A stretch of 64,000 nucleotides of DNA from positions 27,218,001 through 27,282,000 of the forward strand of contig OZ281497.1 of NCBI GenBank assembly GCA_965637545.1. Direction: 5' to 3'. The position numbers and the translations under genes were made by a program. This DNA comes from Phallusia mammillata. Taxonomy: Eukaryota. Within the stretch, counting starts at the first letter, position 1, and each line of letters opens with the position of its first letter. Positions 22,123-49,080 of this stretch are shown piece after piece. The notes below the pieces were generated by a model. That model made no database searches, was not told the origin of the DNA, and saw only the letters and a list, made by a program, of their open reading frames with translations.

Positions 22123-22279
22123 CTCCAGCGAATGCTATGACACTTTGCAACTATATTAACATGTGAAAGTCCTTAATCAATTTGGAAGCGGCGGCAATCC
22201 AACTAATATCTATGATAATACACACGGGGTTAATGACAAATTGGATTCAGTTTACGATAAGGTTCGACGTTACAAATAA
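22123..22279 (+). pseudogene. Internally deleted lectin-receptor remnant (start of TM exon fused to ITIM tail end)
   Basis: CTGAGTTTGCAG|CTCCAGCGAA matches the TM-exon acceptor at 40612-40633. It is followed by YDTLQLY*HVKVLNQFGSGGNPTNIYDNTHGVNDKLDSVYDKVRRYK*, homologous to 41612-41755. Confidence 0.75.
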
Positions 22280-22730
22280 CCCAAACAAACTGAAATTTGA
22301 TTTCAAACTGTTGAATAATTAAATCTCATTTTTTGTGACCATCTGCAATCATGAAGTTAATTACGAAAGCATTTTACAATTTTTTTTAACCGTTTTGTAC
22401 ACGAACATATTTTGCAAAAATGAGCGTTTTTTCGGGTTTCCATTCAAGAAAGCCATTGCCAGCAATACAGAACAAGTTTGTCTGCGTATAGGCGACCGAG
22501 CGTTTTAGACAACGTTCGTCTTTGGCCCAAAGTGGATATCTATGTTTCATTCTTTTGCTTTCTTCAATTTACACAATAAACCTAATTATTATAAAACCTG
22601 TGTTTGCCAGTTTGACAAATCAGCTCAAAAATGAACAGTTGCGTTGTATGTTTATTTACATTTTGTAATCAGCAGCATTGCCAAATAAAGTAAGCGTTAG
22701 CTTGTGTTGTAAGTGTAAAGGCAAATGTAA

Positions 22731-23180
22731 ATACAAGTTACATGGATAGAAATTATTTAGCAAAAGTGTCGAATTAATTTTTGTCAGGTATTGTGTTATT
22801 CCGATTTGTACATGAAAGGCTTTTCGAACATAAAAATAACACGTAGTGAATGTAACTTTGGGTGTTCCTGGTCCAATAATTGCCCTTCATTACACCAGAG
22901 TTCAGGCTAATGTTATAAACTGAGCGGTGATTAGAATATTCAAATTCTATTGAAATTTCACGTCATGAAGTTATTGTATTGATGTCTTTTTTTGTTTGGT
23001 ATTTTCAAGAATATTCGTTCCGAGAGGCTAATTTCGTGCCCATAAGATAAGTTCTTGATTAATGCGTTAATACAAAGTCGGAAGCATCAAATTGCAATGT
23101 AGAAACTTTTAGCAGTAGTCACAGTATACTTATTGCTAAAGAGTTTAGTGGTTAAGGTGAATAGATGTTCTGTTATTATT
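22731..23180 (+). repeat. Duplicated upstream block preceding lectin genes (second copy 28261-28740)
   Basis: Colinear similarity, e.g. CTGAGCGGTGATTAGAATATT and AGTCACAGTATACTTATTGCTAAAGAGTTTAG in both copies. Confidence 0.7.
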
Positions 23181-23457
23181 TTTTTCCATAACTTATTTCA
23201 CTTTCTTACCAGCCAAAACATTTTGCAAAAGACAATATCTCCAAACCTTTAAGTTTTCAGATTGATATGTTTGTAACTACCACTTACAATCCAGACTTTT
23301 TCTTTTTACTTATTTTATAGACTTGAGTGTCAAAGGTATTGAAAAAAATAACGAGGTATAAACAAATATATCCATATAAGCAAGCTCCTGTCTGAGCCTA
23401 AGGTTTAGTAAAAGACTGTCTTTGAAGGAAGTTGTTATTGCTAAAAATTTAACAAAG

Positions 23458-25703
23458 ATGGTGTTAGTTTGGTTGTTTATGTTCTGTTTGTCTGTTCCTT
23501 CTGAAGGACGAATTTGGCACAACTTCGATGGATTTCAATATTCCGTTGAAATGACTCCAGTCTCTTCATATGCTGAAGCAGAGATGGGTTGTTCTGCGTT
23601 GCAAGCTAAAGTAGCTAACGTTAGAACTATAGAAATCTTTGAGTTTTTAAAGAAATTCATAAACCTGACAGGTAACAAATAAACAGTTGCTGCAATGGTA
23701 TCAATAAGATTTGCTCCTCCTTCAGTTTTTTTTTCTTTTGTAAACATCCTAGGTTACCCATACGATGTCGCTTTGTATCAGTGCTTTTCAACCGGGTGTT
23801 TCGTACACCGCAGGGTGTATCATAATTTTTGAAGGGTGTACCACTTTGATGGGGTGTAAATGCTTGTAAAGCAATACTTATCTGACAGACCTTTTATTCA
23901 TCCACATTACTCTTTTGTTAACCTGTACGAAATATTACATTTTGAACTGATTTAATGCAACATATATTTTCCGTACACGGTATAAGTGATGTTTCGGCGC
24001 AAAATGACGTAATACAGCTGTGACGATATTAACCTGACCCTATTGATCACAAAAGTAGCAATACTAGTTTTATTTTTGACTTACGTTTGGTTGAAATTAG
24101 ACATAATTAGATATTGTTTGCAAGCAAGTAACTTTGTGCTGTTTGCACACTAACAAAAACTGTAATTTGAACTGTTACTGTCCGCTTTAGATGAGCCATT
24201 CTCGCTTTACATCGGTGCTAAAAGTGTCGGAAACACACATAAGTTTCGATGGAATGATGGAAGCAATGTTCATCTTACAACATCCATGTGGTCTTCTGGA
24301 CAACCAGATAACAATAGAAGTGATAATTGCGTCACAATGGGTATTTTTTACGAACGACATGTTGATCGGAAATTATATAGATGGTATGACGTACCATGTA
24401 CACATTACAATTCGAGATACATTTGTGAGAAAAAGTCAGCAGGTAATCAAGGATTGGTTGCGGCGGTTGGTGTAATGAGTGGTAAAATAGAATCAAACTT
24501 AAATGTATCATTAAATCCTATTGTGATAAGAATGTCTCATCAATTTGTTGTTTGTATCGGTAGCAAGTTAGTTTGCAAACTGCTGCTTGTATTAAAATGA
24601 TGAACTAAATCTGACATAAATCTGCTTTGTCTGTTGCAGCCACATCATTATTACCATCTTTTAAACCACCAACAACTAGTGTGCAAGCATCTACCAAACC
24701 AGCTACTACAATGAAATCAACACGATCCATATCAACCACAAAAGTCATTTTATCATCCACCAATTTACCAACAAGTCTACAACCATCTATCAAACCAACT
24801 GATTCAACCATATTAACACCATCCACTCAAATAATTGCTACTGAAAGCTCGCATACTGTCAACACTACACAAGGTAACAAGAAAAAAATGTAAATTTTTG
24901 TGAAAGCAGAATGGATCGAACAATCACATTACAACATTGAAATCTTAAAACGCCAACACAGGGAACAAAATGTCAGCTTTTTTAGTTGTATTTACAAGCG
25001 AATGTGGCTTAGTAAGTATAAGCCTGTTTCTTTGTAATTGTGCAGATAGACCGAAACTCAATACCGCCATCATTGCTTCCACAATTGGCGGATGCGTCAT
25101 ATTGGTCGTAATTTGCATCGCCATTGTCTTTGTTACGTCACGCAAGAAAAGAAGGTAACAATAGGACGTTTGAGTACAATAATGAATCGTGGTGACATTC
25201 ACTTTCATAAACCTTTAAAAATACTGTAAACATACTGTACGAGACATTATTAAATACCTTTGGTAGATCATTTCGCTTTATACTTTTCGCAGGGGAAACA
25301 AACTGGTGAACGAAGCGGTAGTAATTGAATACAACACAGGGGGTAGGAAAACAAATGCTGGTTGTTTATAATAGTTACAGTAACTTAGTTGCCTGACAAA
25401 AACACGTAACTTAGTGTGTATACACTGTCTTGAAGTAGTTTTTATTGACACAAGAATGTTATGAAATAAAATGTATTTTGTTAAACAGCTGGAGAGTTCA
25501 AACCCGAAGGAACGTACAACATTCCTCAAATTAAAGAAAACAGTTTTGCCATTCAACATTCAACACAATCACCATCACGTCATCAAAGCGATGACGCAAT
25601 CCAGGGGCCACGTCACGTAGTTGGACAGGCAGCAGCAAGAAGCAGGGATGTCTACGCTCAGGTCAGAAGGTTAAAACAATCAACAAAAAGTTCACCACAA
25701 TAG
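23458..25703 (+). CDS. Type-I transmembrane C-type lectin receptor L1 (357 aa; QPD motif; mucin stalk; short tyrosine-motif tail)
   Basis: Exons 23458-23671, 24191-24442, 24640-24873, 25046-25154, 25293-25342 and 25489-25703 total 1074 nt and are in frame. Signal peptide; CTLD with YIG, FRWNDG, W..GQPD, C, WYD.PC, YICE; Ser/Thr stalk; TM IIASTIGGCVILVVICIAIVFV followed by RKKRR; tail YNIP and DVYAQV. Confidence 0.85.
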
Positions 25704-26959
25704 ACACACGATCCAATGAACCGGATTTACCCTGCGCTGAAATACGTCGGGACAAATAAATCGAGAAATGATTGCAACTAATCATCGACATTTAGCTTAT
25801 TGTGTCCATCTGTGGAACAACTTGCAAACTCGTCTCATTTTCTGCCCTATATTTTACTAAATCTGACTATATTTTTGCTATACTTTATAAATCTATGTTT
25901 TTGTGGTTGAAATCTTGTGTTTAATTCCTATGTTTTCCTACATTTTTTCAGGATTTTCCCGTTTGTTGTTTCTGTAGTTTGTTTAGGACGGTTGCGATGG
26001 GGTTATTTGTATATGTTTTGATCATGCGTCTTAGTCTATTCGGCCAAATGCTTACCTTTTTTCTCGGAATTTGTAGCATACATTTACGTTTCAAACTTGT
26101 TTAACATACATGGACTCGTTTCGTTTGCATCTACTTGTATTGAGTCACGAGTTTTTGACAATCGTTTATACCAGCGGCCGTCAACTCTCGATATGTGTAA
26201 AACCTTTATCGTCATTTTTTGGTTGTCTATTAAATTTTTTTTTACTAGCAACGCGCCAACACCCCTGGCACAAACCATTATTAGACACAAGAATGAATGA
26301 TATTAAAAAAGCATGTTGTGTTGTGTTTTTATTTACAATCTGTCATTAGACAACGCCAAATGTTGTTCTCCAGAGTGTTTTAAATGTTAAGGTCCAAACC
26401 TAAATTTGAATGTTTGGCAAACATGCACCCAGAGATACCTGGAGCTACTTTTAAATGTTTTAGAATAGAGTAGCGACTTGGATACAAACACATAACAAAT
26501 TTGTTGCAAAACGTTCAGCGTAGTTAAGTCAGGCTGCTTAATTTTAAGTCTATTCAACAGTAATGTTACAACAAAGAATAGAAGGCAGAAACAAAGTTAT
26601 CAAGACGAAGCACTATAAGTGAAAATAGGTATAAACACCAGCAATTTGTGTAAGCTAAAGTAAGGCTTTGAATATCAACTAATAGTTTATTGACAATGGG
26701 AATATTCAAATTTTATTTCAATTTTACGTCGTGCGTCAAAAACACGGTTTTAAAGGGTTTCTATAAGCCTAGCGATTTTCTTGACGTAAGACTTTTTTGA
26801 ACCACGTACTATTAAAGCGTTCAGTGACATAATAAATTATTTTAATGAGTCAGGTTCGGCTACGAATAATAGAAAGGTTTTGTAAATGCTCTGTTCTCCG
26901 AAACAAATGTCTATTATAAATTACTAGAATAGACCAGAATTTATATGTAAGTAACTTGC

Positions 26960-28070
26960 TACTGGGTGTTTATTATTGCAAAACGGGTGAAAACCGATAA
27001 GTTTAAGTGGAATGATGGCGGCTATGTTTTAGTACCAGCGAAAATTTGCCACCAGCCTAATTACTACCAAAACATCACAATCCACCAAACCAACTACTAA
27101 CACCGTATTAGTATCTACCAGGACTAATTGCCCCATACACCAAACAAACTATTACTGCACTAATATTACTCTCAAGCATATTAACACCATTAGCGTTACC
27201 ACTTTAATATTCATTAAACAAACCAAAAAACACTCTATTGCCGTTCTCAAAGTTATGAACACGATGGTGTGTGCGGCCACTTGTGAATTGACTGTCACGT
27301 TAAGTACTTTAATGCATGCAACAAGCAAGTTTGGAAAGTAAAATGTGCATGTGAAACAAATCTATGGAGGCAGGTGTTGCTTGTTAATTCGTGTGTTGCA
27401 TTGTTTTTTTCCAATGGAACAAACTGTGCAACAAATTTAGTTCACGCACTAGCGTCCGGCAACAAATAATCCACACAGGTGAATTTGCCAAGTAGAGAAA
27501 TATATCAAACACGTTTACTTTGTATCAACACATTAGCTGATTTGATCGCGATGAGGTGATTTCTATGGATATCAATCATGTTGTGGGTTTGAATAAAATG
27601 CCGCTCAAGAAAACAATTACCTGAATTACGTGCCCGAACCTCAATAGAGTAGCACCAACTTGCGGACTCTGATGGTTCCGGCAATAAATAATAGAGCCTT
27701 GCACCTACTCTTGGTTAGGAAATGTTTTCCTGAGTCAGCTGAGCTTCTTGGGCTATGTTCTTCTTTACTTGTTGCTTTCGCTTCTTTTTGTCATTTATTT
27801 TTACATTAAAATTTTGCAGCTGCTGTTGCTCCAGCAATAGCCAACACAGTCATCATTGATTTAACAACAGGCGGAAGCGTCATATTAGTTACCATCTGTA
27901 TTGTATTTTGTTTTTACTATCTCACGAAATAAAAAGAGGTAACTGTGTTTGCAATATCAAAACTAATCGACTCACATTTAGTTATTTGTGCTTTTGCATC
28001 TTTTCTCTTTAGGAGAAACAAACCGGTGAATGAAGAAGTGACTTATAACGTTATTTATTGCAACGCAGAG
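26960..28070 (+). pseudogene. Degenerate lectin-receptor paralogue (partial CTLD, stalk, TM and juxtamembrane exons)
   Basis: FIIAKRVKTDKFKWNDGG at ~26968 runs into Thr-rich sequence. TM exon 27820-27938 has a frameshift/stop. Exon 28013-28070 reads RNKPVNEEVTYNVIYCNAE. Confidence 0.7.
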
Positions 28071-29457
28071 GTAGTTGACAGTTTCGGTTACCATATCATT
28101 CATATGAGTAGGAAACAAATCAATTATGTATCCTGAGAGTTATTTGTACAACTTATTTGCCGAATTTATGTTAAGTAGTTTTCTGTTATTTAAACCTAAA
28201 CGTTTTCCTGACAAAAAAAATCTTTGAAAGAGTCGATAAATTGAAACGCAGGCTATTACAAATATAAGTTACATGGGTGAAAGTTATTGAGCAAAAGTGT
28301 CAAATTAATTTCTGGCAGGCTATTAGAACTATTAGAACATGAAAACAACACGCAATAAATGTAACCGTGGGTGTTCCTGGTTTCAACAATTGCCCTCCAT
28401 TGCACCAAAGTTTAAGCTAATGTCTAACCTGAGCGGTGATTAGAATATTTAAATTCTATTGAAATTTCATGTCATGAAGTTATTGTCCCAACGTCTATTT
28501 TGGGTTTGTATTCTCAAGAATATTCGTTCCATTATTCATTCCGTGCCCATTAGATACTTCTTCTTTGTTCTATAAGTTCTTGAATAAACCGTTGATTGTG
28601 AACAAAGTCAGAAGCATCAAATATAAATGTAGAAAGGTCTAGCAACAGTCACAGTATACTTATTGCTAAAGAGTTTAGTTGTATAGACGTTCTGTTATCT
28701 CTATTTTAGGCTGAATAGACGTTCTGTTATCTTTATTTTGATCTGTAAAGCATTTTTTACCTCATTATTCATAAAACGTCTCAAATCTTGTATTCATCAC
28801 ATTTAACTTTTGTTTTAAATTGTTTGCATGTATATAACAGTCCAATCCACTCACTTTCTGTAACTAATTACAAAACCTTGGAATGTTGTATGTTATTCGC
28901 ACATTGTGCTTTCCTTTACAACAAAGTTGTTTTAGGCATCAAAAAACAAGTAGGAACTTAGATCAAAACTATATTCGTGGACATATCAACTTTGCAAATT
29001 CTGTTTGCAAACTGTAGGTCACGGGGATTTCTCATCTAGGCGAATTAAGTCGTTTGAAAAAGTGACCTTGTCGTAATACGATTTTTTTTTAATCAATCGA
29101 TGTAGGCAACAAAGTGTTCGAAAATACCTATAGTTTAGTAACTTCGCGACTATGAACATAGGCCTTATCCAGAAAGGCTTTCTATTGCAGTAAGGTTCAA
29201 ACTAATGTTGTATATTCTGCGGATAATATTTAGATTTTATTCAAATATTACATGACGAACTTTCAAAACACTTTTCTCCTCCACATGAACCTTGAAAGTT
29301 GTTAACAGATTGAATCTGATCTTATGCAAGCGCACGCGAGTGTGTTGTTGGTTGCCGTAAATACAGAAGGTTGAAAACGATTGGTTTAGGCTATATGTGT
29401 CTAATTGGTATTGCTTATACAATGAGTGGATGCTTTTAGATTTGTAGGACCATAAAT

Positions 29458-30196
29458 ATGAGGTGGTTGGTTTTGCTGTTTATGTTGAGTTTGTCAGTTT
29501 CTGCTGAAGATCAAAGTTGGCATAACTTTAATGGATTTCAATATTTCATCGACATGACTCCAGTCAATTCATATGCCGAAGCAGAGAGGGGATGTTCTGC
29601 GTTGCAAGCTAATGTAGCTGAAGTTAAAACTACGGTTATCAACAACTTTTTAAAAGGATTCCTAAAGCGGCCAGGTAGAATTTGAGTTACTTGATGTTTG
29701 TTTAGGTTGTATCGACATGTGCAAAACAGTAACATGTGATTTAACATTTGTAAAACAATACACCTACAACTTTTAATAACTTTTTATTGGAGGTTTATTA
29801 CGTTTTAGATTTGTATGTAATGTAAGGAACAAATAAAACTAATCCACTCAAAGTTTATTCCTCTTTCAAACTGATATGAATAATGGGTGTTTTTATTTAA
29901 ATTGAAACGGTAAACTATAAAATGTTTGTTTAGGTGCCATTTATGGGCTGTATATTGGTGCTAAAAGAATCGATAACACAAATACGTTTCGATGGAATGA
30001 TGGAAGCAATGTTTCTCTTACAACCACTATGTGGGCTACAGGGGAACCAAATAACAAATTCGGAGAAGAAAATTGTGTTGCTATGCTGGTGAAAAAAATT
30101 GGCAATTATGAACCTTTCAAATGGTTTGATGTACCCTGTAGATTATTAGGCACAGGATATATTTGCCAAAGAGTTTTTACGTATTTTTGCACTTAG
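29458..30196 (+). CDS. C-type lectin L2 (EPN motif), predicted 159-aa secreted form lacking stalk and TM
   Basis: Exons 29458-29674 and 29934-30196. Signal peptide, LYIGA, FRWNDG, WATGEPNN, WFDVPC, YICQR, then VFTYFCT*. Confidence 0.75.
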
Positions 30197-30264
30197 AGAA
30201 GTAAAATCTGAAAAATATATGTATTCATCTGCCTCATTAAAACCGAGTAATATTTGCTGTGCAG

Positions 30265-31167
30265 AAATGAGTTGTCGAGAAATGCAGTTGAAAGTGAATA
30301 CGTTGACATGAGTAAGTATTTTTGTTTAAACCCTAGTTACGTAGTAGATTTACCACAAGTTGCCAAATATGACTGCCTGTTCATGCTAGGCGTTTGCAAA
30401 AAAAGGTTCGGCCTATTAATTAGGCTAGAATTGTTTATGTTCAAGGTAAATTTTATGTAAAGATGCCATCCTCGGTCAAGTTTGGTATTTGTATTTGTCA
30501 ATGCAATGTTGAGGGTTGCTCATCAAAAATCCTCTCATCGAAATCATCTTTAATATGAATCAATTTTGGAACTTTTTTAGACAGTATTGAGATTTTTATT
30601 CGGAATTTCTTTTGTCTGTTTAATTTGTTTTAAAGTGTGTTTGTTGCAAACAGCTATAAATCGCCGGATTACAGAGTCGCACAACCGTGAACCAATCTAC
30701 ATCAACAACTTCCTGCAACTGTCATCGGTAAAACAATCGGATGGCATTAGTCCTTATAACGTCTATCATGCTCATGGTACTAATTGCCTTTCAATATCTA
30801 AAGTATGTACTTTGCAGCATGGATTAAAAAATATTTTTATTTTAAATATTTAAAAATGTAGCTTATCATTGATTGGCTCTATGCTTTTATATTTTAAAAA
30901 TATTTTTTTTAATTCTATCAATCGGTTTTGTTTTGATATTTGTATTGTCCATCAAATCCCTGCAAACGATTCGTTAATCGGTTATGAAACGCATATTATT
31001 GCAAAGTAGTTTTATAAAGATGAAATTCACCTAAATTTAGAAACACATTCACCAATCTATGTGAATACTTCGGGACAACCAACCACATACAATCACAAGT
31101 TGATGATATCAATCCCTACTGCGTCAGAGAGCGTCGTCCTGATTGCATAACAGTTGATCCTTGGTAA
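30265..31167 (+). pseudogene. Orphan cytoplasmic-tail exon set, type B, copy 1 (30265-30311, 30654-~30802, 31041-31167)
   Basis: NELSRNAVESEYVDM; EPIYINN...DGISPYNV; SPIYVN...DDINPYCV...RRPDCITVDPW*. The first exon has a phase-2 acceptor like the post-TM exons of L1/L3. Phase conflicts are present. Confidence 0.55.
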
Positions 31168-31615
31168 GTATTTTATTTCCGTTTCCATAAATGTTTAGAG
31201 AAACCACATTTTAACCCAGTATTCATTGGCCTCGAAAGTTCGACGGGCCTGCAGGCGTCCTTTTTCCACCCTTGCAATTAGCAGTCTAATTCCAGTTGAC
31301 CTTATTTCTTATCAGTGGTCTGACTGTTTTGAAATGTCGTATACACTAACACGTATAAAAGTTAAAGAGTGTCACAAAAAACGTGAAAATCATTACATTG
31401 ACATAAACACGTTTGTGCTCATTATGTCTGGTGAAAAGTTGCGTGACCTCATAGGATTATAATTTCTAACAGTTTTATTACATAGTGTTGATACATTTAA
31501 ACAAACAAATATGCAAACATTTTGGTGTATAGCGACATAAACTGTTTCGCATCTTCCACTTTAACACTATATGTCGCTATTGAGGTAACATAAGCATTTT
31601 TTAACGAAGATCAAA

Positions 31616-31712
31616 GGCCGAATGGTCTGGCGCGCCTGACCCATACACACACATAAAAAATGATCGGGATTCGTCCCCGGGAGTGTCCTGGGTTCGAACC
31701 CCGTGAAAAAAG
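31616..31712 (+). mobile_element. tRNA-derived short SINE, 5'-truncated copy
   Basis: Partial A box GGCCGAATGG, B box GGTTCGAACCC, A-tail, 7-bp TSD GATCAAA (31609-31615 / 31713-31719). Matches 58385-58500. Confidence 0.8.
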
Positions 31713-32417
31713 GATCAAACTTAACTTGCAGAGATAACAACCTGATCCCTCACAGAAGCCAAACTGTTTTTCGGCGGTTTAAACATTATATCGTCATTTT
31801 ATCACGAACGAAAATGTACAGAATGTGTATTAGAGTTTCGCGGTGTGTTTGTTTTTGTTAACGACGTATAAACTATGGTGGCATTCACATTGGATCAAAC
31901 TTTAAGCATTTCTGTGGTTTGTCTGTGAATTTTTAGGCCGAAAAATCAAAATCTATTTTGCCTGCGACACTTTGATTGTCAACTCTTCAGAAAATCAGAA
32001 AAAATCAGAAATGACGATATGTAAATGTTCTTATAGACTTGAGCTTTAATATTTCTATGTTTATCGACATCCTCTTGTGTAAATATCCTCACATTTAACT
32101 TCGATTAGATTTGTCAAATTCAATAAAAATAAATGCTAGTAAATATTTTTTTTGAATTTAAATTCATAACAACCATGGTCGGAAAAGGTCCGTTAAAAGG
32201 CTTTAGCACTTTGGTTGCAAACACGAAAACCAGTATTGTTGTACTGTAAAAAAGTAATTACAGCAGAACGTTTCTACACTAATTTTTTTAATTAAAAATT
32301 AGAAAACGGTGATTTTTCTAAAGAAAATCTGAAATAGCAGTGGTTAATCTGTCTAGTTTCCCGAAAGTTGGTTATCCTATTTACTCAACCAAGATGAAAA
32401 ATTTAGTTGTTTTACAG

Positions 32418-32486
32418 ATAAAGAAAACCGAAGAAACGTACAACATTCCTCAAATCGAAGAAAACAGTTTCGCCAACCATTTAATA
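32418..32486 (+). pseudogene. Orphan start of a type-A tail exon, truncated by a MITE-like insertion
   Basis: ETYNIPQIEENSF, nearly identical to the last exon of L3 (KTYNIPQIEENSF). Confidence 0.65.
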
Positions 32487-34891
32487 CAGAGGTGTCCACC
32501 CCGTGGCCCGTCGGAAGGTTCTGAGTGGCCCACGTAGTATTTTTTAAAAAGACCCATATTTGCAACTTATTCGCCTACGTAATTTATGGCGAACTTTCAT
32601 TCTGAAAAATTGGCATTTATTGTTTGCTTTATTTCTTTGTTATTAGAGTAGTAATACACAACTGTTCAAGTTACTTTTATTGCGTCACAATACGCGTTGT
32701 TACGCATCACAATGTTCATATTGTTACGTTACAATCTGACTCGTGCTTCAAGAGTGAGTCAGTAATGTTTCTTGGTTCATTGAGATACATCTGGTATCAG
32801 AGACTCGCACAAAACGCATTTAGTAGTAAAAAAACAAAACGCATTTAGCAGTAAAACATCTTATGCACTCTGCAGTGATATACTTTATGCCAAACAGGAA
32901 ACAAAAAGCAAGTAACGCTAACAGACCTTTCCAGGAAAGGTTGACATGTGACTTTAAATCCCCTGCGAGATCAGAAATTTCTGACAGCCATATGGAAAAA
33001 AAAACCGCTTTGCATTGCTCTGTAGCGATTGTGACATAATTTGTGCAAACTTTGCAATATTTGTTTACCAAAATAGCTCGGTTTTGACTCGCTAGCTCAA
33101 AGCTTGCGAGGAAATTAAAATGTATAGCAACCAAATTCAACTGTATTGACAAATCATGTTCGGACTTTGTAATATTTCCTGTCGCAGTTAATTAGGATGC
33201 AATTACGTCATTGTGATGTGGTGTTTATGTGCTTTAGCCGTATGTTTTGTACTGTGCTGTGATTGGATGCTGTTTTGTGTGGGAATTGTGCAAGAGCCAA
33301 TCGCAAGAGCACATGTGTACGATTTAACGCCTTTTTCCGGGGTAAATATAAAACCGCACTCGTTCATTTCGATCTTTCTCTTCCTCTTCTTCTGTTTCTC
33401 ATTCTCTCCAATAAACAAACGAACTGAAGTGCAAGACAACTGTGTGGAGTTTCCAGGACTCTGTCCTGACAAGCCCAGGAGCTTGGGAGATTAAGGACGG
33501 TGGTATACCTTTCTAATTTGTAGTGACTCGGTTTTATAGCTTGTACCGAAACACCTTATTAACACTACAGCTCCATCGTCCATGTCAAGCTCACTGACTT
33601 TGGTTCATCGAGTTCATTGTTCAATTCCCATGTGTCACATTTGTTTTCCCGTTTCGAGTTTCGTTATTCGTTGTTCACTCAAGATCGCTGGACCTATAAA
33701 TACCTCGCCACAAACTTTGTATCTCATTCTAGTTCTCATTTATCTCATTAATGCTGATTCTAGTTTTTTAACGGTTAAAATACTGTTCAAAGTGCGAATT
33801 TATGTTCTGATAATATTCGCCTCGACATCGTGTCTCTTGTCAATTTGATGTACCGCTGAACTTATAAACTAAGTAATTTCTGTTTGTTTATTTGTGTGTT
33901 ACTATTAATAAACTCGTGAAGTAGATACCTAAGTCTGGGCTATAGCAGTTATTAATCGGAGTCAGCTTTGCATTCGCTGCATGTCATTATCAGTGCAGGT
34001 TAAAACGTCTGCACTAAGAAGTATTCTATATACACATGCTTTCTGACAGTTAAGATTTTAGTTAAATCAAATCACACAACAAAGTCTTGAAGAATTAAGC
34101 ATAGTACACAAACAAAAATAAATCTTTTTGCAAGTTCAAAACAATATTGGTGTCCAGGGACAGTTTATAAACATTGCCAAGCAAAAATGCCACCTGGCAT
34201 TACAAAGCAAATACTAAGCTTACATCACCTGATATTACCAAGCAAACACTAAACAGTCGCTAAATAACACTTATTCAAATTCGCGCTACTTCAGTCGGCA
34301 TCATGCACTTGCAGCCGAATTTATAGCAAACTGCAAACCCCCATTTTGTTCTTCTTGTCAGACTGGTTGCTGAGCAATGCCTTTTTTTTTTCTGCGAAAA
34401 CAAGTTCCGATCAAGCCACGAGTTGAGAAGAAGTGGAACATTTTCACAAAACTAAAGTGCTCTGACGGAAAATCCTGTTAAAATACGAATTAAAGACAAG
34501 TGTAATCATAGAGCACAAATACTAGAGAGGTAACTATTTGTTCACTCAAGCGTGAAATCAATCATAACTTGTCTTGTTTGGCAAATATTTTGATTTTTGA
34601 AGCAATAAGGTATTTAACATCTTCTTTCTATGGAATACAGTTTAGACCGATTCATGATGCACAAATGTTTAGCTAAAGTAAAACTGATTGAAGTCTCCAT
34701 ATGTTTGCAGTACAATCATAGCATTAAAATGCAAGCCCATACTAAACAACGTATTTTTCAAGTTGTATAAATGTAAAGCAATGAAAGCGTTACTTGAGTT
34801 GCACACCAAAAACGAGCAATTATAGAGTTTGGCTCATTGAAACACCATCTTTTAATTAACGTGATTAAAAAAGAATTTATTTGTTTCGTAG

Positions 34892-35933
34892 GAACGAGAT
34901 GTCAACGAGGAATGCAGATGAACCGAAAAACGTTAACACGAGTGAACACTTTTTAACAAAAAACAGGACTTACATAGTAAAGTAAAACAAAAACAGAACC
35001 ACAAGTTGCCAAATATGAATGTCTCTCCATACTGAGGGTGTGCAAAATGGGTTCGGCGCGCGGGCCTAATGCGACCTATTGAATAAACTTTGTGTGATCC
35101 GCGGAGACGTCTTGATTTCAAAGGCAGTGTGGCCACTTAACAATTTAATGTGGACCCTACAACGATTCAATTGTTTTTTCTTTTCTCACTGGAATAATGC
35201 GTCTTGGTTGATTCTGCGACCCGACAATGCGGACTCACTTGCAAATATTACTGGGTTGCTGTTAACACTACTGTTTATGTCCGTGTGCTGGTACGGAACA
35301 CAGTAAAACAAATGTAAGGATGTTGCCAGCGATCCAATTTTGGTAATTGTATTTTGCCCATCAGTGTTGAAGGTTGCACAACCCCTGCTCGAAATCAATG
35401 TGAACATAAATCGCTTTTTGTTTTTGTTTACACTTTAATATATTCTGAAATTGTAAAACAGTGTTCTTTTTTAAACAGAAAATAGAATCATAAAAAATCC
35501 CACGAACACACCAATCTACGACCATAATGCCTTACAAGTTGCAGTGGCACAAAAACAAGCTGATGACATCAGTCCTTATTGCGTCAGCCACAAGCAAGGT
35601 CCTGATTGCATATTTTTATCCTCAATGTGTATTTTACGGTCTATCTGTATTTAGAAATGTTCAAATAAGGCGCATTACAATCATTCTTTTTTCTATTAGT
35701 TTGTTTTTACATCTTACATGTAAAAGCGATATTTTATTCAGGTATAAAATACATTTCAATGCAAAGTTGTTTCCAACAGATGGAATTCAACTAAATACAA
35801 CAATCCACCAACCTATGTCAAAAACTCGTACAATTAACCATCAACCACGTCACAATCACAAGCTGAAGACGTCAATCCCTATTGCGTCAGCCAAGATCGA
35901 CGTCCTGATTACATAACATTTGATCCTAATTAA
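34892..35933 (+). pseudogene. Orphan cytoplasmic-tail exon set, type B, copy 2 (34892-34941, 35479-~35626, 35780-35933)
   Basis: NEMSTRNADEPKNVNT; TPIYDHN...DDISPYCVS...GPDCI; PTYVKN...EDVNPYCVSQDRRPDYITFDPN*. Contains an internal stop and a frameshift. Confidence 0.55.
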
Positions 35934-37282
35934 TTTTAGATACAGTACATTGCGACACTATTTTTTTTGCATTAGCTTTGTTTATATGTTACTGTAAATG
36001 GCATTTTATTCCAGTTTAAAATGTAAATATGTGTAGAGCTATTGTTTCTGCGCCTAAAAACCAATGAATAGACCGCGCGCTACCCTTAATGCTTTCGCAA
36101 CACAGTAACAAATAAGCAATCTGACTTTTGTTCTTGTTATAAATGCGGTCTAAAATACGCACGGTTTTAGACAACAAAATTGGGCTAACGTTGCACTTAA
36201 AAACATGATAAAAACCACACAAATCGGTACTAAAAGTTCCCACAAGCAAAGGGCACGTTATTACAAGGCCGACCAACCAAGTCTGCCTGATCGTAGTTTA
36301 CCGCCCTCACGTCAGGGAGCCACCCTCGAGGAAAAACACAAGTTAATTGAGAAAAGTCCCGACGGCGTGTAAAATTAGGACAACACACTGGAATGCCAAG
36401 GCAGCGCGGTGGGTTGCATTCGAAACGCCAAAATGAAAGCAATAAGAAAACGACAAGAAAACAAACAATAAAAACCTATGGTGAAACAAAAACAAAGAAG
36501 ATGAATAACATACAGTGACGTAGCAACAAACAAACTTAGTGCCGGTATAGTTAACAAATAAACAAAGGTGATATTATTCGCAAAATATATATTATGGGAA
36601 ACGAACAACATATAGTGACAAAACAACAAACGAAATGAGTGGCACAACAGTGCAATAAATAAAGTAGTAATATTACTCGTTTGTAAATTTTGTTTGTTTT
36701 GGAAACGATGAAGATACCATTGAAACCAACTAACACTGTATACTGTACAACTATCCACTAGATACCAAGAACAATAACAACATGAAGATGTCAATCTCTA
36801 ACAAAGTAGGACATCGGCCCAAATAACCGACATGGTTTATCAAAAGTGGCGGACATGCAGGCGTTTGTTTCCCGTTGTAAAAATTAGCAATCCTAAACCA
36901 ATTTCATTACTTGATAAACTAGTTGTTCGAAGTGTTGCCCTTCATGGGAGTATAAATTCGTGTTAGTGGCCAGCGTTAATAAAACCAAGTAAGAATCAAA
37001 CAAATGTATGTACGAATATAACACATTCGGTGAGTGCTAGATGTCAGAAACTGCTTTCAAAGCCATTTAAGCAAGGTGTCGATATTGAGGTAAATATGCA
37101 TAATTGGGACATTCAACTTCAAACTGCTATTTTAGATTCGTGTTGTTATGTTGTATCGGTTTTAACGTTTGATTTTGTTGTCGAGAAGTGTGTTGTCGTT
37201 GTAGCAGTCTCTTTTTATTATTATTATTTTTACATCTTTTATTGCCTAAATACCTTAATTTTATTTTATTTCTTGCTTAGAA

Positions 37283-37314
37283 CTGAGGATGCCATTATAT
37301 CGGCGAAATCGATA
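37283..37314 (+). ncRNA. Degenerate minimal hammerhead ribozyme motif
   Basis: CTGAGGA-T-GCC(ATTATATC)GGC-GAAA-TCGA-TA. Stem I is weak. Confidence 0.55.
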
Positions 37315-39071
37315 TTATTTATTTACAATACATTGCAACACGAAAAACACAGATTGATTTGGGTGTACTGAAAGCTTCAGTTTACTAAGTTATGCTATTT
37401 TAGATATTTAAATGGTAAACAGAAAGGAAACGTTATTTCTAGGGTTTGAACCTAAAATCAATTAATTTTTAACGTAAAAAGGAATTTACAAAACGTGCAG
37501 TAAGTTTACCTATACGCATATTGTTGTTACGGACGTAATAAAAATATTTGTTCACGTTCTGCGATTCTTACACGACATACAGGTTTGATGACATATATGG
37601 GATCATATGGGTAAGCAAAAAAAATCAATTTTACTTTTGTCAAAAAAGTAATCAATTCTCTCCACGCAAAGACAACTTTCTGAAATAAGATGACGTCATT
37701 CCAATAAAACTTCCGTGTTACAGTTTCTGTGCATGAGCAAAGGCGTCAGTTGGTCGATTGCTGCTAGTCAGGCTATATATTTAACACTAAAACAAACATG
37801 ATTTCGTGGTAAATGCACAAGACTGACATAATATATCAAACAAATAATTCAAAAATTTAATATCGGAGTCACGTGGTAGTATTGTCTATTTTTAACGAGA
37901 AATAGTCAAAAGATTTCGATCAAATAGCAATGACAATTAAAAACCAATATGCATGCATGTTCACGACCATGGAAGGCAGTTAGCTTGATTTCACTTTTCT
38001 TTCACGGATAATCAATTATCTCAATTGAGGATACGGAAAGTGCTGCGACGTCATCATAATAGAATTTCCTTGTTGTAGTTTATGTGTGCATGAAGAAAAC
38101 AGTCGCGCGGTTCTTTGTTATCTTTGTAGGCAGTTATGTAGGTTATACCCATGTAGCCGCTGCTGCCTCGATAGCGACTTGTTAAAGGCGGCTACAGTGT
38201 AAACTATGATGTTCATTGCAAATTGTTTGGTGAGTCTGATCTTTGCATCTCAATTACAGCTGACTGATTACAGCCCCACAGAGTGTTTCTTATTTCTTTG
38301 TACTCTTGAGTAAACGTTTAAAGGCGAACGATTAAATCAGCTTCCACATCCCCAAAGGGAGAAAAATAGAAGAAAATAGACTACCAGATGACTAAAAATA
38401 GTCCAAGAATAGACCCAGAATTCCCCGGCGACAAAGTCGAAAATAAGCTATATATATAGTAGAGCAAAATATTGGCTATTACGTGAAACCTTTTTTCCTT
38501 TAAGTTATAGAATTCATTTTATGGCAAAGGTGCAATTTATAAAGTCATAGCGCCCTCGAACCGAGCTGCTATGCTTCTTCTCAAGTACGAGCGGCTGTGT
38601 TCTACTTTAAACTTGAAACGGAAACGACAGTATAAACAAGAGGAAGTATGCGTAATGATGAACAAACACCTGTTTGTGCAGAACATTCTAGAATAACAAA
38701 ATGACTCAAAATATCTTATGACTTGCATGAGAACGGAAATACCAACACTTGCATCCAGTTAAAAAGAGGTTAAACACTTCCCCTACATGCTGTGCAACAT
38801 TATTGCAAACAACATGCTAACGTTAAACATAAACTTTGTGCACATTAATATCATGACCGCTACACCCAGAGCACATGCAGGTTTTGCAAGAAAAGCAAAT
38901 TTGAACTTAAAAACTATTATTTTTGAGCAAAGCCTGATTAGGGTTTATTTATTTGTCAGAAAGCTTGAACAAAGTCCGTTTCGTGGGTTTTGTAATGTTT
39001 TAAACACCAGAATGTGTTGCATTTTTATGTGTGCAGTTTGTGCTGAAGAAGCTTAAATTCTTTGAACAAAC

Positions 39072-41755
39072 ATGGTGTTGTTAGTTATTTTTTGTATGTT
39101 GTATTTATCTGTTTCTGCTGACGGGCGAACTTGGCATAACCTCAATGGATCTCAATATTCCATCGAAATGACTCCAGTCCAATCATATGATGAAGCAAAG
39201 AGAAATTGTTCTGCGTTGCAAGCTAATGTAGCTAATGTCAAAACCACCGAAATCTTTAAGTTTTTAAAGACTTATATAAACCTTTCAGGTGACAATATAG
39301 CTCGTTGTTTTGTTATTTCGATAGGAATTGTTTTTAGATATGTTTGTACTTCGGTTTCTGCCACTATGTGACACTAGGATCAAATAACAATTTAGATGAA
39401 CGAGAAAAACGCTTTTCTGAGGACTTAATAGTACATCCAGACGAAAAGGGTTCACAAACATATTACTTCTAATCTGTTTTTATTTTCAAAGATAAACCCC
39501 ACTCTTTTTACATCGGTGCGAGAAGAGTAAAAGGCACACTTAACTTTCGCTGGAATGATGAAAGTGATGTTACTGTTCCAAGAAGTATGTGGGGTTCAAA
39601 ACAACCAAATAATCTTGGCGGAATAGAGGATTGCGTCACAATGGGTTATGCATATTATTTTGTTTCATCTTACAAATTTCATGACGTAGTATGCAGAGGA
39701 CACAGAGCGAGATACATTTGCGAGAAGAAAACTAATGAGAAAAGTGAGCAGAAGTAAAAAAAGTGTCATCGTTTCACAAGTTTCCGCTCAAATAAACAAC
39801 ATATTTTAAATTAGGATGTGCCATTATACACCAAAGGTAAAGAGTAAAATGTGATAAAATAAGTTATTCCACCAAAATGGAAAGCACTTTCGTAGTTTAC
39901 TTTCTGTTATACTCCTGCTGATAGTATAAATGTAAATAATTTGAATTGTTGCATCCACGACCACGTTATTAGTGCTAAAACTATCTACTACCAATGTATT
40001 GAATCAGGCCTTTTACATGGAAAACCAACCGCTTCAACCGTGATGCTATCTACAATGTCAACCAGTTTAACCATGTCTACAGAATCCAGAAGTGCGTTTG
40101 TTAACAACACAACACATGGTAAGTAAACTACATTGAAACTTTTGGCGGATAAAGTTTACTAGATAATTAAAAGTTTTGAAAAATATGTCACTCTGTTTAA
40201 AATGACAGTCGCATCGTCTCACACAAAACAAACGCGATTGCAAATATTTGATTTATTAGGAAATGAAACTGACATGACGTCATACCTATATAATTTCCGC
40301 GTAATAGTTTCTGCTTAAAGCAGCGCAAGTGACTGCAAGTGTGAATTCAAATTTGTAATGCCTTCCTTTTGCCAAACTGGAAAAGAAATACACAACCCAT
40401 GGCTATTTCATCTGACTACTGAAAGATTAAGCTAAACTTTGTGAAAGCATGTTATATGCAAACAAGGTAATAGTAAAAAAAATATAAATTGATTGATTGT
40501 CAACGTTGTGTTGGTGTATTCATGTTTATCCCTGTAAGGATGAACTTGGCACAACTTTAATGCTTTTCAATAATTTCTAAATGCAAACATTCATACTCCA
40601 ATGTTGCTTTCCTGACTTTGCAGCTCCACCGAAACTCAACACATCCATCATTGCTTCAGCAGTAGGCGGATGCGTCATATTAGTCATAATCTGTATCGTC
40701 ATTTTCTTTGTTACGTCTTTGAAGAAAAGAAGGTAACAGCAGAACATTTCTGCTCATCAAACATCAGTACTTCTCTTTGATATACTACATGTTTTAGACA
40801 TACAATAGCAAAGCATCATTTATTACAAGAATGTTCTAACCTAATATACTACTTTGGTACTTTATCAATTTTGTTTGTTTAAGTAATTTTACATTTCCGC
40901 AGGAGAAACAAACCAGTAAACGGAGCGGTAGTGATTGAATACAATGCAAGGGGTAGGAAAATATATGGAATTTGCTTATAATAGTTACTGTAATTATTTT
41001 TTCTTTAGAAAAGTAAAAATTTTGAATGCTTAATTTTTCCCAATCTGCATAAACTTCTGAAGTATGTGTTACTTCTTATATCTATCATAGTAAGTTTCAA
41101 AGCGAAACTATTCTGTTAAAGGCGCAAAATTATTCACTACCGTACATATGTGTTAATATTTAAACATTTTGGTGAGCTCATGTACATAACTCTTTATAAT
41201 ACGGTGTAGCTGAAGCGCGTTTAGTCATGATCCAACAATTGTGCCTTCCACTGTTTTGCGCTCCATATCGTTTCAACCAAGCAAAAAAACTCAACTAAAC
41301 TTAACTAAACTCAAACAGGTGACGATTTTGAACCTGAAAAAACGTACAACATTCCTCAAATCGAAGAAAACAGTTTCGACCATTCAACACAACCGCCCTC
41401 ACGTCTTCAAAACGATGACGTCAACCATTACCACGCAATCCTAGAACCACGACACGAAAACATAATTGTTGACGAAGTCGCACACCAACAAGCGGGAAGC
41501 AGTGATGTCTATGCTCAGGTCAGAAAGTCAAAACAATCAACAAAGGTTCACGACAATGGAGAACAATCACATGATCGAAAATGCGATCACGATCAATTGG
41601 ATGAAGTCAGTTACGACACTTTGCAACTATCTCAACATGTGGAAGTCCACAATCAATTTGCAAGCGGCAGCAATCCAACTAATATCTATGACAACAGAAA
41701 TGGGGCTAATGACGAATCGGATTCAGCCTACGATGAGTTACGCCGTCACATATGA
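39072..41755 (+). CDS. Type-I transmembrane C-type lectin receptor L3 (391 aa; QPN motif; long tail with two canonical ITIMs)
   Basis: Exons 39072-39288, 39492-39743, 40008-40118, 40624-40732, 40903-40952 and 41319-41755 total 1176 nt and are in frame. The CTLD, TM and juxtamembrane exon lengths equal those of L1 (252, 109 and 50 nt). Tail motifs YNIP, YHAI, DVYAQV, VSYDTL, IYDN, SAYDEL. Confidence 0.8.
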
Positions 41756-42089
41756 ACAAAACAAACTGAAATTTGATTCAAAACTGTAAATTAACATTTT
41801 TGATGGAATAGTGATGTCTATTTGTAGTTACTAGCTTCTATCTATTTTTGGAAAGTTCCAAAGTTGTCGCACTGTTTGCATGTATATTTTGTCCAAAAGT
41901 AATATTTTTTTTAGTTCGGTGCATTTCGGCCTGTTTCTTACGGTTTAGAATGAGTGTTCTGACATCGAGCGGTCGTACATGTGTTTGAACAAAGTGGAAA
42001 CGATAAATCTTTTGTAAGCCAATGATTGCCTCATGATTCGCGCAACCCTGTGACACGAACGTCAGGATTTGAGCATGTATAAAACAAAA

Positions 42090-43000
42090 TAACCATTCAC
42101 AAACGAAGCACTGATTTTCAGTACTGCAACTAAACAAACATTTTCACATTACTCAACATACTTCACAGAAGCGCAAAAAAACATAAACGAAACATTTCTG
42201 TAAGAAAAATTGAATTAAGCCGAAAACGCATGTTTAATCATGTACTTTTTCGACTTTGTTTGACACATTGAGTTGGAACAAACCAATCGCAGTCAAAGTG
42301 GCCCATGTAAAACCTGAAGCTTAAATCTGACATATACGTGATAAACGCAGTTTACAAACTTATACACAGCGCCTCCTAGTGTCAGACACGACATAAGCAT
42401 AAGAAAAACAGCAAAAAGTTAAAAAAATGAAGGCAAATAATGCGCAGCTGAATTTGCTGGTGTCGACAATAAACAACTGGAAAATATGATGATTGTAATA
42501 ACGTACTATTACCATGTTTATTATGTGAAATAATACTTTTGTATAGCCAAATAAAATACATTTCTGTATTCTTTTGTTTTGATTTCCTATCCTCAGCTGT
42601 TTACGTACGATTACGTGATAAAAACAATTTAATTGGTTTCCGTTAAAATATATTAATTATAAGTTACTGATTGAATTACCTTAGCAGTTGTTTTTTGAAT
42701 GGAATTTCTCAATCTGTCTTACAACAACCTGACAGATGAAAGTGCTGAGTCATTGGCTCGATGTGTTCACAACATCAGCGTTTTGTATGTTTAGGGAAAC
42801 AACTTCACAGAAGCAGGAAAGAATACCATCCGGTCAAAGTCGCGAGAGAGTGTTCTAAACATTAAATGAAAACTTATGTTAAGACAAAATCACATGTCAA
42901 CAACTTTAATATTACGCTTATAACCATCTCTGATTCTTGTGCGTAGAAAATATGAGTGCCGAACATTGTTATGAAGGACACGATGGTTTACCACACAAAA
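42090..43000 (+). pseudogene. Orphan NLR 3' remnant with dead terminal LRR exon (42699-42869)
   Basis: MEFLNLSYNNLTDESAESLARCVHNISVLYV*GNNFTEAGK. The acceptor AG is lost (TTTTGA|ATG) and there is an in-frame TAG at 42792. Flanks match NLR intron sequence at ~8830-8910 and 15620-15917. Confidence 0.85.
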
Positions 43001-45299: not shown

Positions 45300-45340
45300 A
45301 GGAATATATATTTCGCCTAATAATGGCATCATCAGTTCCT
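45300..45340 (-). ncRNA. Type I minimal hammerhead ribozyme
   Basis: Reverse complement of AGGAA-CTGATGA-T-GCC(ATTATTA)GGC-GAAA-TATA-TA-TTCCT. Confidence 0.8.
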
Positions 45341-46062
45341 GAAAAACGCAAAATATCAAGAAATGTAAAACAAACACAATGTTCTAAGCAACTCAACAAC
45401 GCGAGTGTCGCCAAACACAAAATCGTTAAAAACCTTGCAAACCCAGCAACGCCTGGAAAACCTAAAGGTAACACCTGTGAAAACCTGGCAAGACCTACAC
45501 CATGGACAAATGTAAAGAGAAAAAGGGGGGTGGCAAAAAGAAACCAAGGCGCTCGCAACTAAAAGCCGATAAAACGATAAAAAAGATAAAAAGAAGATAA
45601 AATTAAAAAATTAAACTGCCGTAAACCGTACCCAAAGGCCGTGCAATTACTGACCACTGACACACACAAGTCACACACAAGTATGAAACACGATCACGAA
45701 AATTATCGAATCTTGGGCAGCAACATATTTTGAATATTAAGCGTTGCGCCAGTAAGTTTCAGCCATTTGGCTTCGCAGTGATTCAAACGATCAACATTGG
45801 GTTGCTCCACAAAGGTGACCGTAAAACATTCCGCGATATCTGGTCTCTTCATAAATATATCGTGGTGGTGGATGGCGAAGTGATGGCCCAGCGAGGCGTT
45901 GTCATTGTCACCGCTGGTTTTAAACGTGTTCCACACTGTTTTTAGTTTGTTTTAAGGTTTTTAACGATTTTGTGTTTGGCGACACTCGCGTTGTTGAGTT
46001 GCTTAGAACATTGTGTTTGTTTTACATTCTTGATATTTTGGTGTTGATCTATTGCGTTTTTC

Positions 46063-46103
46063 AGGAACTGATGATGCCATTATTAGGCGAAATATATATT
46101 CCT
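46063..46103 (+). ncRNA. Type I minimal hammerhead ribozyme
   Basis: AGGAA-CTGATGA-T-GCC(ATTATTA)GGC-GAAA-TATA-TA-TTCCT. Stem I AGGAA/TTCCT is perfect and stem III is the palindrome TATA. Confidence 0.82.
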
Positions 46104-49052: not shown

Positions 49053-49080
49053 ATTTATTAAAGTAAATTAAATTTTCATC

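Follow-up and report, generated by a model that had tools for sequence, protein, structure and literature searches.

The analysis concerns a 64,000-nucleotide stretch of DNA from the ascidian Phallusia mammillata, referred to here as the window (C4:27218001-27282000 of the species' own 240-Mb assembly, which was also used for all own-genome searches). It carries three paralogous genes for proteins with a C-type lectin-like domain, L1, L2 and L3, which are located on the + strand in a head-to-tail arrangement. Loci fetched elsewhere in the genome are labeled L0xx (for example L019 and L049). The window is eukaryotic DNA with a base composition of 33–40% G+C and no gaps. The signal-peptide/lectin exons, at 23459, 29462 and 39076, show 77–80% DNA identity in a direct-repeat search, and the second lectin exons of the three genes are 70–82% identical (repeat families D3/D6). 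This second exon scores 35.2 bits in L1, 34.7 bits in L2 and 29.4 bits in L3 against Pfam Lectin_C (PF00059), above the curated cut-off of 22.6 bits in each case. The genes are flanked by a NACHT-containing NLR gene upstream and by NLR 3′ remnants downstream, the arrangement described in an earlier model annotation made from the letters alone (the sequence-only reading).

Lectin genes of the window and their public relative

The L3 gene (39072-41755, + strand) is intact. Its six exons (39072-39288, 39492-39743, 40008-40118, 40624-40732, 40903-40952 and 41319-41755) give a model of 391 residues, with GT-AG at all junctions and an open frame. The encoded protein contains a signal peptide, a lectin domain with the motif QPN, a Ser/Thr stalk of 37 codons, a membrane span and a full cytoplasmic tail of the first of two types found in this family (tail A). 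Seven tyrosines are present in this tail. The last exon provides six of them, in YNIP, NHYHAI, DVYAQV, VSYDTL, NIYDN and SAYDEL, and the mini-exon of 50 nucleotides supplies the seventh, in IEYN. VSYDTL and SAYDEL match the consensus of the ITIM (immunoreceptor tyrosine-based inhibitory motif), applied here as [S/I/V/L]xYxx[I/V/L]; two or more such matches are found in 1.5% of shuffled L3 tails.

The L1 gene (23458-25703, + strand) also has six exons (23458-23671, 24191-24442, 24640-24873, 25046-25154, 25293-25342 and 25489-25703), joined at GT-AG junctions in an open frame to a model of 357 residues. Its lectin domain has the motif QPD, and its Ser/Thr-rich stalk is 78 codons long. The tail A of L1 is truncated by a stop codon at 25701-25703 and aligns only to residues 3-79 of the L3 tail, and an internal deletion has taken out the HYxAI site. 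The tyrosine motifs that are left are YNIP, DVYAQV and the IEYN of the mini-exon, with no match to the ITIM consensus. Two complete receptors had been proposed for this region. L3 is one, with two ITIM-consensus motifs, whereas L1 falls short of such a receptor, because its tail stops early and without an ITIM.

The exon borders of both genes were placed from the paralogue boundaries defined by a public protein (P0001, see below), and the joined exon models served for the frame and splice-site checks. A tblastn comparison of the L3 exon peptides with the window finds membrane and tail exons behind L1 and L3. A phase 1-1 cassette encodes the stalk, and P0001 lacks this cassette. In two contigs from DNA runs, X3 and X4, the L3 stalk exon differs from the reference at seven linked positions over 56 bases (40074-40129), at a depth similar to that of the reference form; either an allele that has diverged or a paralogue of almost the same sequence, placed at this position, would account for the variant.

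Both models begin with a hydrophobic N-terminus, with SVSA before the mature end, and have a single hydrophobic span (best 19-residue Kyte-Doolittle window of 3.11 for L3 and 2.88 for L1), directly followed by the basic residues KKRR. With the signal peptide at the N-terminus, one span and KKRR on the inner side, L1 and L3 are predicted to be type I single-pass proteins, in agreement with the topology proposed previously.

The L2 gene (29458-30193, + strand) has a signal peptide and a lectin domain with the motif EPN, encoded by exon 1 (29458-29676) and exon 2 (29942-30172). A comparison of the junction with that in L049 indicates that the usual splice donor after YICQ(K/R) is lost, and the open reading frame (ORF) reaches a stop seven codons past the domain. 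Downstream of this stop are orphan cytoplasmic exons with intact splice sites (30265-31147, + strand), consisting of a mini-exon ending in ESEYVDM (30265-30311) and two modules of the second tail type, tail B (30650-30775 and 31010-31147). They contain the motifs EYVDM, NPPIYVNN and SPYxV, and homologous exons follow the stalk and membrane exons in L039-L049. The gap between the L2 stop and the EYVDM mini-exon is about 90 nucleotides, compared to about 1 kb in the paralogues, where the stalk and membrane exons are located. The lectin exons of L2 cluster with the TM2 subfamily (B2, see below) on the tree. Because the donor is lost, about 1 kb is missing and the tail-B exons are still found downstream, L2 is best described as a lectin-only derivative of a B-type receptor, the parent of these orphan exons. 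The prediction that L2 is a soluble lectin is thus borne out as far as its coding content is concerned, a signal peptide and a lectin domain only, but the gene derives from a receptor of the second subfamily through loss of the stalk and membrane exons, and it may be either a secreted lectin or a pseudogene. A lysine-bearing hydrophobic stretch at 30581-30650 was considered as a membrane span of L2 and rejected: it is an intron, since what the paralogues have in common begins behind the AG acceptor.

A search with the tail exon through 1.84 billion representative proteins finds a single match, P0001, a protein of 355 residues (E 4e-64) that has 81% identity to the L3 tail. It is deposited as NCBI CAB3231619.1 / UniRef A0A6F9DA46, 'C-type lectin domain family 4 member G-like [Phallusia mammillata]'; the name is merely automatic and the protein is unstudied. 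P0001 contains a signal peptide, a lectin domain (43.5 bits for the whole domain), a membrane span, the mini-exon and tail A. Its sequence maps in five GT-AG exons, with 91–99% identity, onto the paralogue L019 (C4:28.2034-28.2084 Mb, minus strand), which places its origin in a different individual of this species or of one very close to it. A word-based protein search with P0001 returned only P0001 itself, and an exact-sequence contig look-up gave no match. The sequence-only reading had asked whether any molecule links the lectin domain to the tail and whether L3 has described homologues. P0001 does join the two parts, but it is the product of a paralogue and not of L3, and it is the sole relative found with the tail exon. 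An mRNA-based embryonic (egg-to-larva) transcriptome is available for the species (PMC7237864), and P0001 plausibly originates from it, a link made by date and species alone; a search of the supplement of that study for lectin names found none. If P0001 is from this transcriptome, one family member is transcribed with its lectin domain and tail joined.

A tandem family with two tail types

The tail-A exon has 48 matches in the genome, of which four are on C1 (3.6-3.75 Mb) and all others on C4 between 26.8 and 29.04 Mb. By our own count about 19 of the 48 are full-length and open, and the remainder are partial or have stops. Lectin exon 2 has at least 150 matches, and all but three of the matches listed are on C4. 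The colinear order of exon 1, exon 2, (stalk), membrane exon, mini-exon and tail is found in at least 15 of the 20 tail-A loci fetched. The smaller cluster of tail-A receptors, at C1 3.60-3.75 Mb (L007, L009, L012, L018, L020, L023 and L024), contains near-identical duplicate pairs, and exon 2 of L018 is identical to that of L020.

Tail A carries the six tyrosines of YNIP, (S/N)HYxAI, DVYAQV, VSYDTL, NIYDN and SxYDEL, and all six are invariant in the 19 full-length tails. Only 25 of the 148 columns in the alignment of these tails are invariant, and they include all six tyrosines (hypergeometric P 1.3e-5). Each full tail has one to three matches to the ITIM consensus, and of the six sites that define tail A two or three fit it.

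A tail-B query (30581-30850) has 30 matches in the genome, all of them within the lectin cluster on C4, and most are located 1-2 kb downstream of one of the matches listed for lectin exon 2. The twelve tail-B loci fetched are complete genes, with the order exon 1, exon 2, stalk, membrane exon, mini-exon and at least one tail-B module. Their membrane exon is either of the A type or of a divergent type (TM2), and their mini-exon is either of the IEYN type or ends in E(S/P)EYVDM. Each module, ETHxNPPxYVNN...DDIxPYxV...QG, is a phase 1-1 exon. The tyrosine motifs of tail B are YxxM (in EYVDM), NPxY and YxN.

Neighboring genes with A and B tails have closely similar outer domains, with 80–87% identity in exon 2 and 75–82% in exon 1. 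In comparison, exon 2 of the window genes L1, L2 and L3 is 43–50% identical among the three. In a tree of the exon-2 peptides of 18 A-tailed and 11 B-tailed genes, the TM2 group stands apart, and the B-tailed genes with an A-type membrane exon are scattered among the A-tailed genes. At least seven changes of tail are needed on this tree. A single clade of A-tailed lectin domains is rejected by the approximately unbiased (AU) test (difference in log likelihood of 90, p 1.5e-5); a quick tree had been viewed before this test, and the groups were defined by an independent trait. The dS values of the membrane and tail exons (0.22-0.26) are a third of that of exon 2 (0.79), which fits exchange or homogenization of the 3′ exons.

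Paired receptors have very similar outer regions and opposite signaling (PMC3533184). The near-identical lectin domains with either an A or a B tail, together with the rejection of separate origins, therefore represent a paired-receptor layout, related ligand-binding domains on different tails, and this part of the sequence-only reading is supported. The order [B,B,A] recurs along the chromosome in the direction of transcription. The region from 29 to 42 kb of the window is one such unit, in which the middle gene has shrunk to a tail exon at 35484-35591.

The pairwise ratio of nonsynonymous to synonymous substitution rates (dN/dS) is lowest in exon 2, at 0.38. Exon 1 has a value of 0.49 and the tail exon one of 0.50, and the ratio rises to 0.79 in the membrane exon. 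With the codons of exon 2 divided into loop/binding surface and framework by canonical lectin-domain landmarks, the framework has a dN/dS of 0.26-0.29, and the loops and binding surface have 0.70, with 1.10 in close pairs. This pattern suggests a binding surface that is either relaxed or diversifying.

The tandem arrangement of a multigene family with many broken copies agrees with the rapid birth-and-death that had been suggested for it. The decay could also mean that the window copies are a graveyard of duplicates without present function, of which L3 is merely unbroken so far. More than half of the tail-A matches are indeed partial or interrupted by stops, and L3 is the only fully intact gene in the window, next to L1 with its premature stop, L2 with its exon loss and at least five fragments. 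On the other hand, the framework and the tail have dN/dS values of 0.26-0.5, the tail tyrosines are invariant, some 19 tail exons are full-length and open, and a public protein product exists. We consider this explanation very improbable.

The NACHT exon of the NLR gene in the window has 123 matches in the genome, about 90 of which are located within 6.7 Mb of C4 (23.9-30.6 Mb), a very large NLR expansion for a tunicate. A zone of 2.35 Mb (C4 26.8-29.15 Mb) contains 19 full and 21 partial tail-A matches, 30 tail-B matches and 30 NACHT matches, the last typically spaced at one per two to six lectin genes. The interleaving of lectin genes with NLRs that was noticed in the window thus holds at the megabase scale. 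The shared duplicated blocks show joint copying of lectin genes with pieces of NLRs. Their linkage is thus real, but it may be mechanical rather than functional.

A mechanical linkage would also suit receptors for cell-cell or gamete recognition unrelated to defense (self-sterility, larval settlement or tissue adhesion), with the NLRs as accidental neighbors in a duplication-prone region, since the NLR 3′ ends and the lectin genes were duplicated as one block. Ascidians have polymorphic systems of gamete self-recognition, and if P0001 is from an egg-to-larva transcriptome, one member is expressed before adult immunity matters. However, no sequence relation to the known ascidian self-sterility genes was seen, and the gamete systems known so far are much smaller and less decayed than this family. 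We therefore regard this possibility as improbable.

Possible ligand binding and signaling, and comparison with known receptors

All four canonical lectin cysteines are present in L1, L2, L3 and P0001, in GCSAL, (D/E)(N/D)C(V/I)(T/A)M, DV(P/V)C and YIC, and the WIGL-type core motif reads YIGA or YIGS in these four copies. The lectin domain matches 29 chains of solved lectin domains at E<1e-3. The best sequence match is DEC-205 CTLD2, the second C-type lectin-like domain of this receptor (E 1e-9), and CLEC4D, CLEC4A, Langerin and Mincle are also matched in sequence. At the EPN/QPD position, P0001 has the same QPN as L3, and the next acidic residue and the Asp of the WND motif are kept in all of them.

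The reading that we favor, with a probability of roughly 0.6, is that of a Phallusia-specific type I lectin receptor family with fast turnover, whose tails A and B are exchangeable and whose genes are amplified together with NLRs. An intact member has a signal peptide, one lectin-like domain encoded over two exons, an optional Ser/Thr-rich stalk exon, a membrane span and a modular tail of small exons. On this reading, tail exons have been swapped between lectin-domain lineages, which gives neighbors with near-identical outer domains and different tails, and amplification took place in [B,B,A] units that included NLR genes, with quick decay of the copies. The data show the structure of the genes, the size of the family, its modular tails, their conservation and the clustering, whereas we infer that the tails are phosphorylated, which sign the signal has, what the ligand and the cell type are, and that the role is immune. 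A ligand that binds to the lectin domain at its variable loop surface would cluster the receptors, and Src-type kinases would phosphorylate the tail tyrosines. SH2 or PTB proteins could then dock, those of the SHP/SHIP type on tail A, which offers ITIM-consensus sites, a DVYxxV site of the Botryllus type and YxN sites. Tail B could bind SH2 and PTB proteins, with YxxM for p85 (PI3K), NPxY for a Shc-type PTB domain and YVNN for Grb2. The cell would then integrate opposing signals from the A and B tails. The lectin-NLR complex looks like an innate recognition-receptor complex.

A kinase of the type that might participate in such signaling is encoded elsewhere in the genome. A tandem, apparently intronless pair of Syk/ZAP70-type genes is located at L051:666-2552 (C2:25608465-25610351) and at about C2:25619108. 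The one that was checked encodes, in an ORF of 628 residues, a tyrosine kinase domain besides two SH2 domains; this tandem-SH2 ORF had been considered as an SHP-type phosphatase, an assignment that was rejected in favor of the kinase. More than 60 matches to exons of tyrosine-phosphatase domains are found in one array of 1.8 Mb (C1 0.02-1.83 Mb), and matches to SH2 domains cluster at C5 22.70-22.86 Mb. Other families of tyrosine-signaling genes thus seem to be expanded in this genome as well.

Several observations weigh against the favored reading, or against parts of it. Reads over the L3 region (38500-42400, sets X1-X4; no run is recorded as RNA) have DNA-like coverage and yield few, tiny contigs with no exon-exon joints, and of the contigs putatively from RNA, which are all tiny, one (39575-40039) is unspliced. 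The transcript origin of P0001 is likely and unproven, and the assembly of PMC7237864 is a peptide-space consensus in which paralogues could have merged. The dN/dS values of whole exons all stay below 1, and they do not establish positive selection. In L3, L1, L2 and P0001, His, Tyr, Phe or Trp takes the place of the Asn in the WND motif, and this column is variable in the 18 A-type copies of exon 2. In mannose-binding protein this Asn is a ligand of both the calcium and the sugar. The canonical site 2, which combines the triplet and the acidic residue with both the Asn and the Asp of WND, is therefore incomplete, canonical calcium-dependent sugar binding is doubtful, and so is the glycan sensing that had been ascribed to the receptors. 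Each of the ITIM-consensus motifs also fits the endocytosis signal YxxPhi, and NPxY is a classic endocytosis signal. The residues DE before VSYDTL make this site also similar to a hemITAM, a single-tyrosine form of the immunoreceptor tyrosine-based activation motif (ITAM). The sign of the signal is unreadable from the sequence. ITAM spacing (YxxL/I, 6-12 residues, YxxL/I) is found in neither tail A nor tail B, and the membrane spans of the B receptors fetched have no charged residue, unlike those of vertebrate activating partners. Profile scans of the genome for Y_phosphatase and SH2 domains gave no gene with both, such that an SHP-type phosphatase was not resolved. The inhibitory function proposed earlier depends on motif matches that fit YxxPhi signals equally well.

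The dual reading of these motifs is the basis of an explanation in which the proteins are endocytic or scavenger receptors for glycoconjugates, microbes or debris, with YxxPhi in tail A and NPxY in tail B as signals for clathrin adaptors, in the manner of the mannose receptor, DEC-205, CD302 and the asialoglycoprotein receptor. The YxxPhi pattern is matched by YHAI, YAQV, YDTL and YDEL, and the NPxY pattern by NPPIY. Lectin receptors of type I that cross the membrane once and carry tyrosine-based motifs for uptake are already known, and DEC-205 CTLD2 is the best sequence match of the lectin domain among solved structures. In comparison, six invariant tyrosines in a tail of about 146 residues, with conserved acidic flanks and YxN or YxxM contexts, exceed what sorting needs, and the exchange of two tails on near-identical outer domains is a pattern of paired signaling. 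On this balance purely endocytic receptors appear unlikely, although uptake and signaling roles are not exclusive.

The paired signaling receptors of the favored reading have counterparts in vertebrates. The lectin-like receptors of the natural killer (NK) gene complex and of myeloid cells (Ly49, NKG2/CD94, DCIR/CLEC4A and Dectin) are similar in having a single C-type lectin-like domain, tandem clusters with pseudogenes and rapid lineage-specific turnover. They also include inhibitory members with ITIMs and activating members with similar outer domains, a pairing comparable to that in Phallusia. However, the NK-complex receptors are type II, with an N-terminal tail, whereas the Phallusia tail is C-terminal behind a signal peptide and a stalk. 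Their activating members rely on a charged residue in the membrane combined with ITAM adaptors, or else on a hemITAM, in contrast to the YxxM, NPxY and YxN motifs of tail B itself. There is no orthology with these receptors, as tail A has no relative outside Phallusia among the representative proteins searched.

Siglecs, KIR and LILR share the type I topology, C-terminal ITIMs, paired members, clustered genes and birth-and-death evolution. Their outer domain has an Ig fold, while the only outer domain found in the Phallusia proteins is Lectin_C, and there is no sequence relation. The comparison to Siglecs in the sequence-only reading is therefore appropriate as an analogy of logic, but the N-terminal V-set Ig domain that binds sialic acid in Siglecs is absent here. 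The type I lectin receptors of vertebrates (the mannose receptor family including DEC-205, CD302 and layilin) are alike in topology, in the outer lectin-like domain and in the tyrosine-bearing tail. They are single-copy, conserved and mostly endocytic, many have multiple lectin domains plus other modules, and none is known to form a tandem family with ITIM-consensus tails.

Among tunicates, the Fester/FcoR proteins of Botryllus schlosseri are type I, are encoded in polymorphic multigene clusters and have tails with ITIM, hemITAM and 'core' tyrosine motifs (PMC12582321). Their 'core-2' motif, [A/D]VYxxV, matches the DVYAQV of Phallusia, and in both families tails switch signaling motifs and genes are amplified as linked units (PMC12582321 for Botryllus). 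The outer domains of FcoR are Ig and Sushi domains, rather than lectin domains, and the switching of motifs occurs through alleles and alternative splicing (PMC12582321), as compared to the exchange of exons between genes in Phallusia. The likeness of the tails is by motif only, and Phallusia is solitary and has no colony fusion, unlike Botryllus. Tunicates may nevertheless share a private phosphotyrosine code, with DVYxxV present in both. Two other ascidian membrane proteins with a C-type lectin-like domain, BsCD94-1 and CiCD94-1, are expressed in blood cells; they are type II proteins that exist in one or a few copies, and the text consulted reports no ITIM tail for them (PMC5465252). The Phallusia family is type I and multicopy. 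By analogy, it may work like the paired clusters of vertebrates (the NK complex and the leukocyte receptor complex) and like Botryllus FF/FcoR, while being a member of none of them.

A stronger version of this analogy would make the region, a supercluster of about 2.3 Mb, the solitary-ascidian counterpart of the NK-gene and leukocyte-receptor complexes, with inhibitory-type A tails against activating-type B tails and co-amplified NLRs, which together would discriminate self from non-self or recognize microbes by weighing opposing signals. We regard this as a tentative and somewhat unlikely extension of the favored reading. To our knowledge, colony fusion in Botryllus is the only case in which the discrimination between friend and foe by these animals is understood in detail.

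The literature searched contained no description of the Phallusia lectin receptor family or of the NLR expansion. Newly brought out here are the second tail type and its exchange with the first among lectin lineages, as well as where L2 comes from, the repeating [B,B,A] units and the megabase map with the NLRs. If the favored reading is correct, paired-receptor logic would have been invented independently on a lectin basis, tied to more than 100 NLR genes, and with a combination of domain and topology that vertebrates do not use for paired recognition. The family would then be a tractable case for how signaling tails shuffle between recognition domains and for whether the recognition systems of tunicates share phosphotyrosine docking motifs.

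Remnants, NLR pieces and other elements of the window

At least five receptor remnants are found in the window when the orphan exons behind L2 are counted, in line with the four or more that had been noted. The first (22133-22276, + strand) is the distal end of a tail A, with NIYDN, SVYDKV and a stop; it matches residues 101-147 of the L3 tail in tblastn (66% identity, E 5e-17; repeat D7), and no other part of its gene is located upstream. A decayed receptor copy at 26969-28040 (+ strand) consists of a lectin-exon fragment (26969-27061), a Ser/Thr-rich stretch, a membrane exon (27843-27905) and a piece similar to the mini-exon, recognized by tblastn (E 0.01 and 0.006), ORFs and the DNA repeat D10. 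A fragment of a tail-A exon (ETYNIPQIEENSFANH) is located at 32430-32501 (+ strand; tblastn 71% identity, E 1.5e-4). The tail-B module at 35484-35591 (+ strand), with NTPIYDHN..DDISPYCV, is an orphan that was identified by tblastn (E 1.3e-5), its own-genome match and the unit pattern, and it is probably the last trace of the middle gene of the [B,B,A] unit.

The central NACHT/winged-helix exon of the upstream NLR gene is located at 4973-6678 (+ strand). Pfam NACHT scores 45.3 bits at 4973-5680, and NOD2_WH and NLRC4_HD2 are below the cut-off. The exon is divided between two overlapping frames (4973-5680 and 5647-6678), with an open frame of 357 residues compared to 557-612 residues in most paralogues. 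This split is a frameshift that reflects either a pseudogene or an assembly error. The NACHT exon is followed by repeated exon cassettes at 7457-15209 (+ strand; direct-repeat families D1 and D2), which are presumed to be the leucine-rich repeat exons of the NLR, so that the gene has the NLR order of a NACHT domain and then putative repeats.

On the other side of the lectin genes, what is left of the 3′ end of an NLR occupies 42103-44369 (+ strand) together with the spacer downstream of it, with 72–89% identity to the upstream ORFs in tblastn (repeats D9 and D11). The pieces at 42103-42177, 42699-42866 and 43528-44369 are a duplicate of 8722-8943 and 15918-18648. The duplicated spacer is split by a long terminal repeat (LTR) retroelement (region 44400-53400), whose gag-pol ORFs of 262-416 residues, read by eye, are located at 49081-53300 (+ strand), and the spacer resumes at 53387-54225.

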